NCBI GenBank assembly: GCA_000320545.1
Contig: ADNK01000782.1
Coordinates: 1-40,947 of the forward strand
Direction of reading: 5' to 3'
DNA: 40,947 nt
Source: Bigelowiella natans CCMP2755
Taxonomy: Eukaryota > Protista > Cercozoa
Every line of letters begins with the position of its first letter. Positions within the stretch are counted from its first letter, which is position 1. The position numbers and the translations under genes were made by a program. Positions 29,184 through 40,947 of the stretch are shown piece by piece. Below the pieces are notes generated by a model. That model had not been told where the DNA came from. It saw nothing but the letters and a program-made list of their open reading frames with translations, and searched no databases.

Positions 29184-30541
29184 GTCTTTGGTAAAGGAGG
29201 AGGAAGAGGAGGAATATAAATAGCGGCCTTTTATCATCTTGCGCTGTCTCAGCAGCGAAGAACTCGGATTGAGTGCGTTTGCAGTCCTCCAAAGATGCCT
29301 CTGTGGAGGGGGAGGGCTATGTGTGAACGAATGGTCGTCATATGAAGGGCTCGCTCGAAAATTCTTATATAAGGGAGCACGGATTTGCTTGAGTTGGGGT
29401 ATTATTCTTGAAACAGGCGTGGACAGGGAGTTCCCGAACCCTGAAACAATCGATTTGTATATAATTATGATTATCAGAGCCTTTTGTCGCAGTATTTCGC
29501 ACTACTAAAACTTATACACCTTTAAAAATGATTTACCTTTTGCATCGAAAGTTTGCAGGAGAATAGAGAATGCAATGGTGACAGAAGGCCATTGGTGCCT
29601 CGTCATCGGGAATCTATCAAAAGTAGGTGAAATTGCAGGCCAGACGAAAATCAACACGACAACGAGCAGAGTTAGTCTTGATATGACAATGTAGAATAAC
29701 AATAACAACATATTCTCAAGATATCTTGCATATAAAGGGGCGCTCATATAATAATGACGTCAAATCATCTCCCCCTCGGATGGATGTTCGATTGTGTGTT
29801 CGTTCGGCAACATCTACGGCACATTGTTGCCAACCTGCAGGAAACTATCTTCCCTGCCTTTCTCCCGTCGACCGAAATGTTTGACCCTGTTTACATTGTG
29901 ATCAAATCGTGACAAATCAACACGAGATACGTAAGCTTGAAAGATGAAGGTGTTGGCTGCGGATGAATGTCAACCAAGCAGAGATGGGGTACCCTACTCG
30001 AGTGCTCGGAGGCCCAGCGAAGCCAGTCAGACTGTAAAAAATGATGAGATAAACATGAAAAGCGTGAAACCCAAGCTAATTCTTACAATATGCCATAATA
30101 TTATCTTGTCTCAGGTCGTAATGCACGGGATTTGCTATGATTATCACCACAAAAATGCATTTGGTTCGGATAAATAAGATTTATCATCTGGGAATATCTC
30201 ACATTTTATTGTCGCGATGAATAAACGCCCAGAGATTCTTGCGGCGTTAAATTCGGTTCCGATTTGGAATGAAACACACGAAATCTTGGCCTTTCCGCAC
30301 GAGCACGCACTGCACAGTTCGTGTCATAGATGTCAGCCGGTCCAGCAAATCACGATTTTCCCTCAAAATACAAGCGAATTTTGGCCAAAGACAAGCGAAC
30401 TGAGGTGTCGTCGTAGTTAAAATTGAATAAAATTGGTGCACCGTGTCATGAGCATCACCATCACATCATCGTTCATCACAACACGGAACAAATTGAATTT
30501 GAATTTTGAACCTACAGCACGCAGAAACCAAATTGACGAGA

Positions 30542-32414
30542 ATGCTCAAACGTTGCGTTGGATTAACAGTTCTATTGATGGCTTCAGTCGTAGGGGGACA
30601 CACTCTTCGAACGAGGAAAGGCCAGAGTGATGTGCGGTCGCATCTCCAATTGGATCAGGTCCTGAATTGAAAAATTACTATGTCCAATCTCATTTGCGAC
30701 ATCATAATTCTTCTCAGGAATGGCTAATCGTGGGGGAGGGGAAGAACAAGACAGACTACACTAAGAAGACTTTCAGCGGAATCAATGTCTTCAAGCACAT
30801 CAGCGAGAAAATCTACAGGGACAAGACTGGAAAGGCAAGACAGTTTGCAGACAAGTTATATGAAAAGTTGATTAGCATGGAGGAATCTGATTTGGCGACG
30901 AGGGTCGATGAGGAAGAGCAATATGGGAATCTACCAAAGTAAATACCATATCGTTTGTTTCACCGTCATTCTATGTATCTGCCATGTCCTTGTCGTAGCA
31001 ATACTTACACCAAAAAGAATATATAACACTTCCTTTGACATCAATTTTGCAGCCTGTCATTGAATACAACATCTTAGTTAAGTGCAGACTCACATAATAT
31101 GATGATGATCACAATCTCTTTTTTAATAGAGACATGAAGGACTGGGTGAAAGGCTACGATAAATTAGTGATAGAGGATCTTAAAAAATGGCCAAGCCTCC
31201 ACAAAGCGAATCTGTTTCATTGGATTCGTCATTTCACATTTGGAGAGGATCAAGAGGGAGACAAATTCGCAGTAAACCCTCTTTTTGGTCGAGAGAAGCA
31301 CAATCGATACTACAAGAGTTTATGGGACTTGGCAAGAGCTCTATATGGTTGGGAGTCTTCTTTCCCCAATCTCTTGCAGGAGTATCAAATTGCATCTGAA
31401 CTTAGTGCCAACCATTGTGTTAACAAGCGCTACGATCAGATATTAAATAAGATACATGCTTTTCTGGAGAATCCGTACACTAGGGAGGAAAGCACCGCAA
31501 TTCCTAGCTATGGCAAATATCTCAAAGAAAAGATCGAAGAGGTCGTCGAGAAGGCAAAAATTGATTTCAGATCAAATGAGCGTACATGGGATGACGGCGT
31601 ATTATGGGCGAATTACTATACCCGGAACTTCGGAAATAAGAATGGTCCTTTTGGCCCTGTGCCATCTAATTTCATGCCTATCTTAGAGGATCCGAGCGTT
31701 ATCAATCTTCCCCATCGAGATGGAGACGACAATCTCAGCGAAGCTCAGCGTAGATTTTTTGTAAAGGTGTCCATTTTGCACGATATATCTATCTGGTTCA
31801 AGGAATGCCCCGGATTTACCAAGGAAACAAAACAGAAACTTTGGAGTCCCGTCCAATGGAGGAATTTTCCAGCAGCTATTGCGATGCAGGAAAACGGCTT
31901 CCCATTAGATCATGTGAATCACAAGCGTCCAGAAAAGGCATGGATTCCTGTTGATGCCGAAGCAAAAAGCTGGAGTAATGATACCAAATATTCGACTGAA
32001 GAGACAAACCCTGCATTTCTTTTCGCACGCAGGTACAAGATTCCAATGTGGGGGCGGCATTCTTATACAGTGAGTCACGAATTGAGGCTCCTCGATTTGA
32101 TTAATCAATACCAATCTGAAACTCGATTCGACGCTTTGGATTTCGCTGTTGTGATGTGGAGTCAAGCCGCTTGGTGGAGGCAATTTTATGATCACACAAA
32201 AAACCTTCCATACCACACCTTCCATGAAACACTCGATGGCCAGTGCGATTTTATAAATTCTAAAACACATAGTTTTGAATACAGCCTATGCTATATACCT
32301 CCAGTTGGGCTTTGCGAAAACTGTTTGGGGAATAGAAGTGACAATGGAGCTTATGAACCAAATAACCTTAAACAGCTATTCGTTTGGCAGAAAATCACTC
32401 AAAATTGCGATTAG
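30542..32414 (+). CDS. Secreted ~540-aa protein with a putative bacterial toxin/effector-like domain; exons 30542-30658, 30718-30938, 31130-32414
   Basis: Exon lengths 117+221+1285 nt = 541 codons including stop, with GT-AG introns and matching phases. N-terminus MLKRCVGLTVLLMASVVGG looks like a classical signal peptide. The gene model is well supported; the domain call is by motif recollection only. Confidence 0.8.
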
Positions 32415-32530
32415 ATCGATTACTCCATACAAGTCTAATCAAAGCCATACATATAAGTGTATACAATAGCGCGCGCGCGCGCACACACACACATGTATAT
32501 ATTGTATATATATATATATATATTTATATA

Positions 32531-32574
<44 letters not shown>

Positions 32575-33072
32575 ACAGATTATACATCATACATATTTAA
32601 ACCGTTTTGTTAGAAGGATTCGGGGCTCAAAATAACAACACTAAGCTTGCTAGCTTGAACAAGTATTTGCGATCACGGCTAGCTTTAACGATCAAATGCA
32701 TCATACATACTTATCAGATATGTCTATCACATAAAACCCAATTGTATCAGCTTGTCTGAGAGCTCTCTAGCTCTAGAGCTATATGATGAAGTATCATCAC
32801 TGACGACTTACATCATTACACCACCATAACAATCAATTACAACTGGTCTATATGTGCATGCGCAAGCTAGCAAGTAACTTCGCTTCATGGCATGGTTTGC
32901 GATTGATAGCTGTGTTTGTACTTACAGCGTGGCACATGTTCGTAGGCATTGCTAGATTGTGACAGCATGATCTAGTGATGTGCATCATCACAAAAGTGCT
33001 TCTTACAAGATGTTCGTCGTGTGTCGCGTGAGCTCTTCTGCAGCTCTAGAGCTTGCTTGTCGCCACAATCAA

Positions 33073-39668: not shown

Positions 39669-40721
39669 TCATCGCTTTCGGAACTTCACCAACCACCAGG
39701 TAATAGATTCCTCTCTAACCTTATCTCCTTTGTCGCTTACCCAGAACTCACCTTCGTCCTTAGGTTCGTGTCCATACCAGCCCTCTGCATCAAGGTCCCC
39801 CAGGACCTTATACCAGTGCTCAAAGGGTAAGTCGGGAACAGCTAGGTAGAGTAGCTGATATTTTCCGTCCTTTATTTTCATAGCTACCCTCTCCATATTT
39901 CGTAATCCAGGGTAGCCTAGATAGACAATCTTCATGCGCCAATCGTCGTTCACCCTGACCTTATTGTTTCCATATTCCACATCGAACTTAGGTCGGGGTC
40001 CTAAACAAGGCATTGCTCGCTCCCACACAGTAGGGTTTACTTTAACATCCTCTAGGAGCTTCTCACCGATATCATAATTCTTTAGGTGACTGATGTGGCG
40101 CAAGGTGACCCTGTTCCCATCATAGATGTAGTACTGCTTCCTCCCCTTCCTCTCGGTAACCTTTGCAACGCCACCCCAGAAGGGGTCTTGTTTATTTCTC
40201 GATCTCAGATTTACCTTGGCCCTAACATACTGTCCTTCCTTTAGAACTCGGCCATCGTACGGGACCTTCTCGTCTTCGCTCTCGGTATCGTCGTCGTTGT
40301 CGTCGCCTTCTTCCCTCTCCTTATCCTTGATACCTCCCCCAGACGTGAAGGTGTCGTTTACTAACCCTTGTATCTTGTCTGGTGTGGTGCTATTTATCCT
40401 GCTTAGGTTGGCCAAGGTGCGGTGGAGTCGCTCTACCTTGGAGTTGGACTGGGCATAGTATACAGGTGAGGCATCAATATTAGGGTGTGGTAGCTGTAGA
40501 AGAGAGGTCTCATTATCCACATGTAACTTCTTTGGTATCTTGTTTATGCTAACTTCATCAGGGATAGCCTGGAGCTCAGACTCCCAGGTACGGTAGCAGT
40601 TAGTAAGCCTCTGCTTATATAAGCCTTTGTTCTTCTTAGCAACGTTGACCTTGATAATCTTTTTAACCCAGCACTTTCCAGTGGCCACATCAACGAAGGT
40701 AAGGTAGTGGAAGCCAAAGGT
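39669..40721 (-). pseudogene. 5'-truncated pol: integrase core, SH3-like region and DAM-methyltransferase-like C-terminal domain
   Basis: FHYLTFVDVATG, LHVDN (second catalytic D), YAQSNSKVERLHRTL (catalytic E), LKEGQYVRAK...KQDPFWGG...RHISHLK. The first 14 aa of the ORF-track entry come from the LTR, not pol. Confidence 0.85.
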
Positions 40722-40947
40722 TGTTGCGCGTAAGGTGTTCACAGGCCGAGGCGCTACGTGCACAAGTAGGCAGGGGGGGGGAAAGGCACGTTTGCTTCCT
40801 TTTGAAGAGTTGTGTTTATTTTTATTAAAGATTATATTTTTATTAAATCGTGCACTGCGTAATCATTCGCGAAGCTTTCGCGAATGCCGCCGCACGTGGG
40901 GCAGCACACTTCCGGTGTGCTGCCATGAGTCCCGCCGGAACCCACGT
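40722..40947 (-). repeat. Second LTR copy (truncated by window end)
   Basis: Base-for-base identical to 39292-39517 on visual comparison. Confidence 0.9.

Follow-up and report, generated by a model that had tools for sequence, protein, structure and literature searches.

The contig ADNK01000782.1 of the chlorarachniophyte alga Bigelowiella natans CCMP2755 (assembly GCA_000320545.1) was analyzed over its whole length of 40,947 nucleotides, referred to here as the window. It carries on the forward strand a single-copy, transcribed nuclear gene of three exons, which sum to 1623 nt (540 codons without internal stops), and the third exon encodes a domain related to bacterial toxins (Table 1). An earlier note, made from the DNA sequence alone, had described this gene as intron-poor and its product as a secreted protein with a bacterial effector-like domain. 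No paralogues were found in the 91-Mb B. natans assembly by a protein search and a family-profile search. Exon 3 contains the longest open reading frame (ORF) of the window (426 aa; the runners-up have 364 and 288 aa), and its translation is 100% identical to JGI Bigna1 protein 71183. The G+C content of the coding sequence is 43.2%, compared with 43.8% for the window.

Transcription and leader of the B. natans gene

The three-exon model is correct, as three runs from two studies yielded assembled transcript contigs that contain both GT..AG joints. The two introns are precisely spliced out in the contigs of runs X1 and X2, which belong to study P1, and of run X5, from study P2. These spliced contigs also demonstrate transcription of the gene, on which the earlier note had made its proposal depend. 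The 5' ends of the transcript contigs lie at 30537-30565, and there is no joining to the extra upstream exon of the JGI model, which has 605 aa and begins 65 residues upstream, within an ORF at 29944. Transcript depth is zero across 29897-30478. The positions of the contig starts and the zero depth indicate that the 65-residue N-terminal extension of JGI 71183 is apparently a prediction artifact. A separate transcript contig terminates in an exon at 29835-29886, which is part of the neighboring gene. At the other end of the gene, a compound microsatellite (CG, CA, TA and a long GA run) occupies 32457-32581, starting about 40 nt past the stop codon. The transcript contigs stop at the edge of this microsatellite and hence do not reveal the actual 3' end of the mRNA.

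The first 19 residues of the B. natans protein resemble a signal peptide. K3 and R4 are followed by a hydrophobic stretch of about 15 residues and by V-G-G before H20, and hydropathy is above 1.3 for windows starting at residues 1 to 10. Exon 1 has no homology to bacterial proteins, and intron 1 separates the leader exon from the bacterial-like part of the gene. The leader is thus signal-peptide-like, as the earlier note had proposed, but the word "secreted" goes further than this, because plastid and periplastid targeting in B. natans starts with a signal peptide, too.

Table 1. Features of the B. natans gene, with positions in the window
Feature	Position	Strand	Remarks
Assembled mRNA span (spliced transcript contigs)	30537..32456	+	X1 blocks 30537-30654, 30714-30938 and 31130-32456; X2 and X5 equivalent
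Start codon ATG	30542	+	Start of exon 1
Exon 1: start codon, signal-peptide-like leader, then short basic stretch	30542..30658	+	
Signal-peptide-like leader, about codons 1-19	30542-30598	+	Hydropathy and residue composition
Intron 1, 59 nt, GT..AG	30659..30717	+	Joint 30654/30714 with the cut at +4, three runs
Exon 2, 221 nt	30718..30938	+	Opens with L-I-V-G...D-Y-T motif
Intron 2, 191 nt, GT..AG, phase 2	30939..31129	+	Joint 30938/31130, three runs
Exon 3, 1285 nt, 427 codons and stop	31130..32414	+	Stop codon 32412-32414
MCF1-SHE (S-HxxxE) domain, clade NM1S-5, bacterial origin	31200..32282	+	Family profile E 4.5e-70
Invariant Ser codon, S311 of exon 3 (S424 of the 540-aa protein)	32061..32063	+	Invariant in 62 of 62 sequences
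H-x-x-x-E codons, H362...E366 of exon 3 (H475 and E479 of the protein)	32214..32228	+	
C-terminal tail with five Cys	32244..32411	+	Not in bacterial relatives; kept in P0002

Bacterial relatives, fold and family of the exon-3 domain

Sequence searches were run exon by exon, and the exons were joined only for the reading frame, the Cys count, hydropathy and the classification of strain differences. Searches of each exon against Pfam, NCBIfam and PDB sequences gave no match; in Pfam, nothing was found for the three exons at E<=1 or for six segments of the domain at E<=10. An exhaustive HMMER search over 1.8 billion cluster representatives identified 86 relatives of exon 3 at E<=1e-3, 39 of them at E<=1e-10, and almost all of these proteins are bacterial; for 38 cluster representatives of the bacterial domain, E ranges from 1e-22 to 1e-10. 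The relatives align over about 330 residues, the homology runs the full length of exon 3, and the bacterial ones are 20-31% identical to the B. natans protein. Most have 470-800 residues, of which the matching domain takes up about 300-350 in the second half, and a few are giants of 2,000-7,000 residues.

An N-terminal Pfam eCIS_core domain (PF13699, formerly DUF4157) is present in 21 of the 49 aligned relatives, and members from Symploca, Moorena, Streptomyces, Actinosynnema and Saccharothrix are annotated as DUF4157 domain-containing proteins. DUF4157 is a marker of toxins associated with extracellular contractile injection systems (eCIS) and mostly lies N-terminal to the toxin domain (Geller et al. 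2021, PMC8213781; Danov et al. 2024, PMC11297309). About 1000 predicted eCIS-associated toxins (EATs) have no annotated domain after DUF4157 (PMC8213781, PMC11297309).

With one genome taken per species, the relatives were placed at 52 loci in Pseudomonadota, Actinomycetota, Bacteroidota, Cyanobacteriota, Acidobacteriota and Myxococcota. Contractile-injection-system genes adjoin the gene of the relative at four loci. The Dyella silvae homologue lies downstream of a contractile-injection tape-measure gene, an AAA ATPase gene and one more gene, and a similar gene order was found for P0033 on two metagenome contigs (L056 and L057). P0004 is flanked by a gp25 baseplate gene and a tape-measure gene (L058), and an AAA gene of the type in the Dyella locus occurs within a few kilobases at eight further loci. 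In two metagenome proteins, P0021 (2815 aa) and P0037 (3946 aa), the domain is combined with a papain-fold Gln_amidase (glutamine deamidase) domain and DUF3626, which is a polymorphic-toxin architecture. The link to bacterial DUF4157/eCIS toxin domains, which the earlier note had proposed, is therefore borne out by the full-length homology, the eCIS_core domains, the neighboring injection-system genes and the multi-toxin giants. On L056 (9871-10662) and L057 (3509-4300), a gene with a Jacalin-lectin domain follows the gene that combines eCIS_core with the toxin domain. On L058, the gene of the relative lacks eCIS_core and is followed by a Gp49/HTH pair resembling a toxin-antitoxin module.

The eCIS_core/DUF4157 module is absent from the algal protein, as judged from the Pfam searches of all three exons. 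The operon context of a contractile injection system was not found for the algal gene either, which is an intron-bearing nuclear gene in a window whose ten long ORFs have no Pfam match; the 364-aa ORF at 39669-40763 on the reverse strand, translated as one ORF, gave none at E<=0.001. The algal protein thus derives from an EAT but is not one.

The family alignment of 62 domain segments is colinear over nearly the whole of exon 3 and contains 12 invariant residues (exon-3 numbering: K212, D218, E291, R300, P305, S311, W349, H355, H362, E366, D369 and Y384); H365 is nearly invariant. The four motif blocks listed in the earlier note are present in the translation of exon 3 and coincide with conserved blocks of this alignment, including those of the Ser and of HxxxE. 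The spacing between Ser and His is 43-44 residues in the bacterial relatives and 51 in B. natans, which is due to an insertion of 7-8 residues between them. The region of the bacterial C-terminal helix or extension is replaced in the alga by the Cys-rich tail, where the confidence of the structural model is low; the five Cys of this tail fit an oxidizing compartment.

The AlphaFold model of exon 3, built on the family alignment, reached a predicted template modeling score (pTM) of 0.81. An independent AlphaFold model of the Dyella domain reached a pTM of 0.90 and a mean predicted local distance difference test (pLDDT) of 88.9. When the exon-3 model was compared with 48,161 representative PDB chains, only Mcf1 (Z 9.1, 258 residues), LnaB (Z 8.1, 191 residues, root mean square deviation [rmsd] 4.1) and SidL (Z 4.8) exceeded the background of Z<=3.8. 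A second comparison gave Mcf1 at Z 10.3 and 9.8 and placed model residues 48-427 on residues 411-881 of Mcf1, its N-terminal effector domain (PMC10716152). With the Dyella model, the same three proteins were recovered in the same order (Z 9.3, 8.0 and 4.7; next 3.2). Foldseek against the PDB found nothing significant for either model, with LnaB and Mcf entries recurring at the highest TM values. A shape search of the ESM Atlas gave only unrelated families at TM 0.2-0.3, and the family profile gave only one chance match among PDB sequences, LnaB and Mcf1 being undetected by sequence.

Mcf1, LnaB and SidL all belong to the S-HxxxE family, which was defined by its HxxxE motif (Fu et al. 2024, PMC11251166). 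The fold has since been named MCF1-SHE and divided into one classical and five new clades, with a distant tie to PAP2 phosphatases (Black et al., Mol Cell 2026, PMC13431035). In both structure searches here, PAP2 enzymes (G6PC1, LpxE, PgpB, PhoN, 7f17 and a vanadium haloperoxidase homologue) recurred at Z 2.1-3.6, which is in the background range; these weak tails of the model comparisons, rich in PAP2 enzymes, appear to agree with that tie. In LnaB, S261, H305 and E309 are essential for ATP-dependent AMP transfer (PMC11251166), and in SidL/Ceg14, S527, H571 and E575 are essential (PMC12092593). By motif and spacing, S311 of exon 3 corresponds to S261 of LnaB and S527 of SidL. The H-T-F-H-E of exon 3 was also considered as a zinc-metalloprotease motif, and the domain as an Arg-Ser-Glu ADP-ribosyltransferase. 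Both readings were rejected: the fold, which is helical, matches that of S-HxxxE enzymes, and it is HxxxE that is conserved.

Proteins of the clade NM1S-5 usually have the layout "Metallopeptidase/MPTase-PVC + NM1S-5". All entries in the published table are bacterial, with hosts among Streptomyces, relatives of Dyella/Xanthomonas, cyanobacteria, Bacteroidota and myxobacteria (PMC13431035). One relative of exon 3, P0013 (NEQ80442.1, Moorena; E 1.3e-17), is itself listed there as NM1S-5 with the domain at 297-579. Relatives from Chitinophaga polysaccharea (569 aa), Pseudoalteromonas ostreae (874 aa) and Saccharothrix obliqua (725 aa) agree with listed members by organism and length, and those from Pseudoxanthomonas broegbernensis and Pseudonocardia xinjiangensis by organism only. 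By its homology to listed members, its S...HxxxE triad and its fold, exon 3 is a member of clade NM1S-5 of the MCF1-SHE (S-HxxxE) superfamily. It is thus a new eukaryotic member of a known, recently defined clade of toxin enzymes and not a new kind of system. Among the best-ranked papers in the literature, there was no joint mention of Bigelowiella with DUF4157, eCIS, LnaB or Mcf.

Origin, introns and selection

Only two eukaryotic relatives, P0002 and P0018, were found, and two word-indexed searches gave no further ones. P0002 is a 252-residue fragment on a 1-kb contig of a JGI sample; it is 70% identical to the B. natans protein and has a similar 3' flank. The chlorarachniophyte Amorphochlora amoebiformis supplies P0018, a hypothetical protein that starts with a signal-peptide-like stretch, has an intact S...HxxxE triad and is encoded beside tubulin genes on a 484-kb contig.

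In the maximum-likelihood (ML) tree, which is unrooted, the eukaryotic lineages fall inside a clade that holds sequences of Pseudomonadota, Bacteroidota and Cyanobacteriota. This clade is separated from a mainly actinobacterial clade with 100/100 support. Both eukaryotic lineages are on branches of about 3.4 changes per site. The three chlorarachniophyte-type sequences are not grouped in the best tree, yet their monophyly is not rejected (approximately unbiased test, P = 0.32), so that one or two transfers are both possible. The wide spread of the family in bacteria, the small number of eukaryotic sequences and their nesting in a bacterial clade indicate that a transfer from bacteria into chlorarachniophytes is well supported. 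The horizontal transfer that the earlier note had proposed is thereby supported, with relatives in six or more bacterial phyla and, among eukaryotes, only chlorarachniophyte-type sequences nested in one bacterial clade.

The motif that opens exon 2 resembles one upstream of the domain in bacterial proteins. Against a profile of the bacterial upstream region, 12 of 2000 shuffles scored as well as exon 2 (P about 0.006), and the Amorphochlora protein scored 13.7 bits on this profile, a clearer match than that of B. natans. At the sequence level, this is only suggestive of homology between exon 2 and the bacterial linker. Should the match be genuine, intron 2 would interrupt sequence of bacterial descent and would be a gain that postdates the transfer.

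The Amorphochlora gene model spans 19 kb and has at least 15 small exons that split the domain many times. Both introns of B. natans do lie in the 5' part of the gene, as the earlier note had pointed out. This pattern does not, however, serve by itself as a sign of a recently arrived foreign ORF, given that the same domain is exon-rich in Amorphochlora. The intron-free domain of B. natans, therefore, does not simply reflect a recent arrival; its lack of introns may just as well be an ancestral state or have come about by 3'-biased intron loss. The middle of the Amorphochlora model may be mis-predicted, because the K...LHD block of the domain is unrecognizable in the annotated protein. In the Amorphochlora locus (L055, 6001-25209), a 7-residue repeat occurs fourfold after the leader of the relative, and an exon-like segment (residues 278-299) recurs about 10 times between 16.9 and 18.4 kb.

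The ratio of nonsynonymous to synonymous substitution rates (dN/dS) between B. natans and P0002 is about 0.30 (250 codons). Run X5, which carries the same species label, contains a transcript variant with 24 single-base differences (about 1.5%) over 30565-32434; this variant is a divergent strain or allele. Of its 20 changed codons, 15 are nonsynonymous, and none of the invariant residues is hit. The B. natans protein thus evolves fast but under selection.

Interpretation and comparison with known systems

The explanation that we consider probable is that the gene encodes an expressed, selected and horizontally acquired toxin-type enzyme of the S-HxxxE family, which sits behind a signal-peptide-like leader and is kept from the cytosol of the alga. 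About 460 of the 540 codons would then descend from a bacterial toxin gene of the type that serves as a payload of eCIS, which are injection machines resembling phage tails. The donor protein would have consisted of an N-terminal loading module (eCIS_core/DUF4157, PVC-type metallopeptidase-like), a linker and a helical enzymatic domain of about 300 residues. The alga would have retained the enzymatic domain with all invariant residues, including the Ser...His-x-x-x-Glu triad, and dropped the loading module. It would also have acquired a signal-peptide-like leader on an exon of its own and the Cys-rich C-terminal tail. The protein would enter the endoplasmic reticulum and act in an oxidizing, noncytosolic compartment, which may be extracellular, in the endomembrane system or food vacuole, or in the plastid complex. 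In analogy to LnaB and SidL/Ceg14, the protein may transfer AMP or a phosphoryl group from ATP or a related nucleotide onto another protein or a metabolite, or it may split ATP into AMP and pyrophosphate. If the enzyme depends on a cytosolic cofactor, for example actin, its exclusion from the cytosol would also shield the alga. The narrower proposal, that the captured eCIS-payload enzyme has been rerouted through the secretory pathway as an active, cofactor-independent weapon in the extracellular space or food vacuole, or as a nucleotide-processing ecto-enzyme, is put forward only tentatively. A role in predation, defense or competition, as suggested in the earlier note, may be imagined for such a protein.

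Several points weigh against the explanation considered probable here. For the triad, the agreement with LnaB is one of alignment ranges and spacing. No NM1S-5 member has a known biochemical activity, and LegK4 and Lpg0209, which belong to MCF1-SHE, show no adenylylation (PMC13431035). The high proportion of nonsynonymous changes between B. natans strains or alleles indicates weak constraint on short timescales. In B. natans, proteins bound for the plastid or periplastid compartment can likewise carry a signal peptide with a basic stretch behind it (PMC3542566). Nor does a secreted enzyme of this type have an obvious way to an intracellular target when no injection device carries it.

The destination of the protein is where another explanation, which shares the origin and the enzyme type, departs from the preferred one. 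The leader could be bipartite and direct the protein to the plastid, which has four membranes, or to the periplastidial compartment, where an organellar protein or metabolite would be modified. B. natans plastid and periplastid proteins require a signal peptide followed by a transit-peptide-like sequence (PMC3542566), and R, R, K and R do occur within 15 residues past the hydrophobic core of the B. natans leader. A long stretch rich in Ala, Ser, Lys and Arg likewise follows the hydrophobic start of the Amorphochlora relative. The basic stretch of B. natans, however, is short and has acidic residues in it, and the Cys-rich tail, which is kept in P0002, fits a secretory or extracellular fate. 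On this evidence, plastid targeting is possible though rather unlikely.

Less is to be said for the two remaining alternatives. The gene might be a weakly constrained leftover of an old transfer, transcribed but nonenzymatic or reused as a noncatalytic binding protein. The very long stem branch, the low identity to bacterial relatives and the high nonsynonymous/synonymous ratio between strains would be in line with such a fate. We nevertheless regard it as improbable, given that 12 of 12 family-invariant residues are retained and untouched by strain differences, that dN/dS is low in the longer comparison with all 540 codons open, and that the triad is retained in Amorphochlora as well. A still smaller chance is given to the absence of any transfer into the alga, with bacteria having acquired an old eukaryotic family or the scaffold being bacterial contamination. 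In its favor, the tree has no root, and branches as long as the eukaryotic ones may be misplaced. Nonetheless, the distribution of the family, which spans six or more bacterial phyla at 52 genome loci and only three chlorarachniophyte-type eukaryotic sequences inside one firmly supported bacterial clade, makes this explanation very improbable. So do the two spliceosomal introns confirmed by cDNA contigs, the host-like G+C content and the position of the Amorphochlora copy beside tubulin genes on a long contig.

Only in 2024-2026 did it emerge that the S-HxxxE (MCF1-SHE) enzymes form a large class of bacterial toxins and that their AMP-transfer chemistry is unusual. In the B. natans gene, a eukaryote has kept an NM1S-5 domain under selection, without the module for loading into an injection system and behind a eukaryotic leader. 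It offers a natural experiment on the role of the domain without an injector, and a soluble, signal-peptide-bearing version may express more easily. Through this gene, eCIS payloads are also tied to protist targets, in keeping with the view that many eCIS in the environment are directed against microbial eukaryotes. If the protein is indeed a rerouted, active enzyme, it would be the first eukaryote-encoded NM1S-5 adenylyl- or phosphoryl-transferase and would speak directly to a point raised by Fu et al. (2024), namely whether S-HxxxE chemistry is also employed by eukaryotic cells themselves. The donors would then be bacteria that attack protists or are eaten by them, and the enzyme would be used as a weapon against prey or competitors or as an ecto-enzyme.

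The closest of the known systems are the bacterial NM1S-5 proteins, which are homologous in sequence to the algal protein over the whole domain and have in common with it the invariant residues, the triad and a predicted helical fold with one beta-hairpin. The algal protein differs from them in having neither the DUF4157 module nor the injection-system context and in possessing the signal-peptide-like leader, two spliceosomal introns, several insertions and the Cys-rich tail.

LnaB (Legionella pneumophila Lpg2527, PDB 8k6e) is an actin-activated phosphoryl-AMPylase (PMC11251166). It matches the models structurally (Z 8.0-8.1, about 190 residues, rmsd 4.1-4.2), and the likeness includes S...HxxxE, the 44-residue spacing of Ser and His, a Tyr that immediately precedes the catalytic His and, upstream of the Ser, a beta-hairpin. 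LnaB differs in its clade (NM1S-2), its delivery by Dot/Icm and its dependence on actin, and HMMER finds no sequence similarity. SidL/Ceg14 (Lpg0437) is also activated by actin; it converts ATP to AMP and PPi and adenylylates 3-phosphoglycerate (PMC12092593, PMC13431035). The spacing of its triad is that of the bacterial relatives, and it ranked third in both structure searches. The structural match is nevertheless weak (Z 4.7-4.8), and SidL additionally possesses a helical domain at its N terminus, a lid loop and a partner metaeffector.

The N-terminal effector domain of Photorhabdus Mcf1 (PDB 8p50, 8p51 and 8p52), which represents the classical MCF1-SHE clade, is the best structural match (Z 9.1-10.3, 230-258 residues). 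This domain is toxic in yeast by a mechanism that is non-ADP-ribosylating (PMC10716152). It differs from the algal protein in being part of a 2,929-residue self-translocating toxin, from which it is freed by autoproteolysis, and the identity over structurally aligned residues is 11-13%.

The B. natans gene provides an example of toxin capture in Rhizaria, and to our knowledge, few such transfers have been described in this group. A parallel exists in the Dae amidases of ticks, which are domesticated type VI effectors, that is, a bacterial effector domain, directed against other bacteria or against eukaryotes, captured by a eukaryote and given a secretion signal. The algal case differs from that of the ticks in the enzyme class, in the delivery system of the donor, which is eCIS for the alga, and in the recipient lineage, a rhizarian alga.

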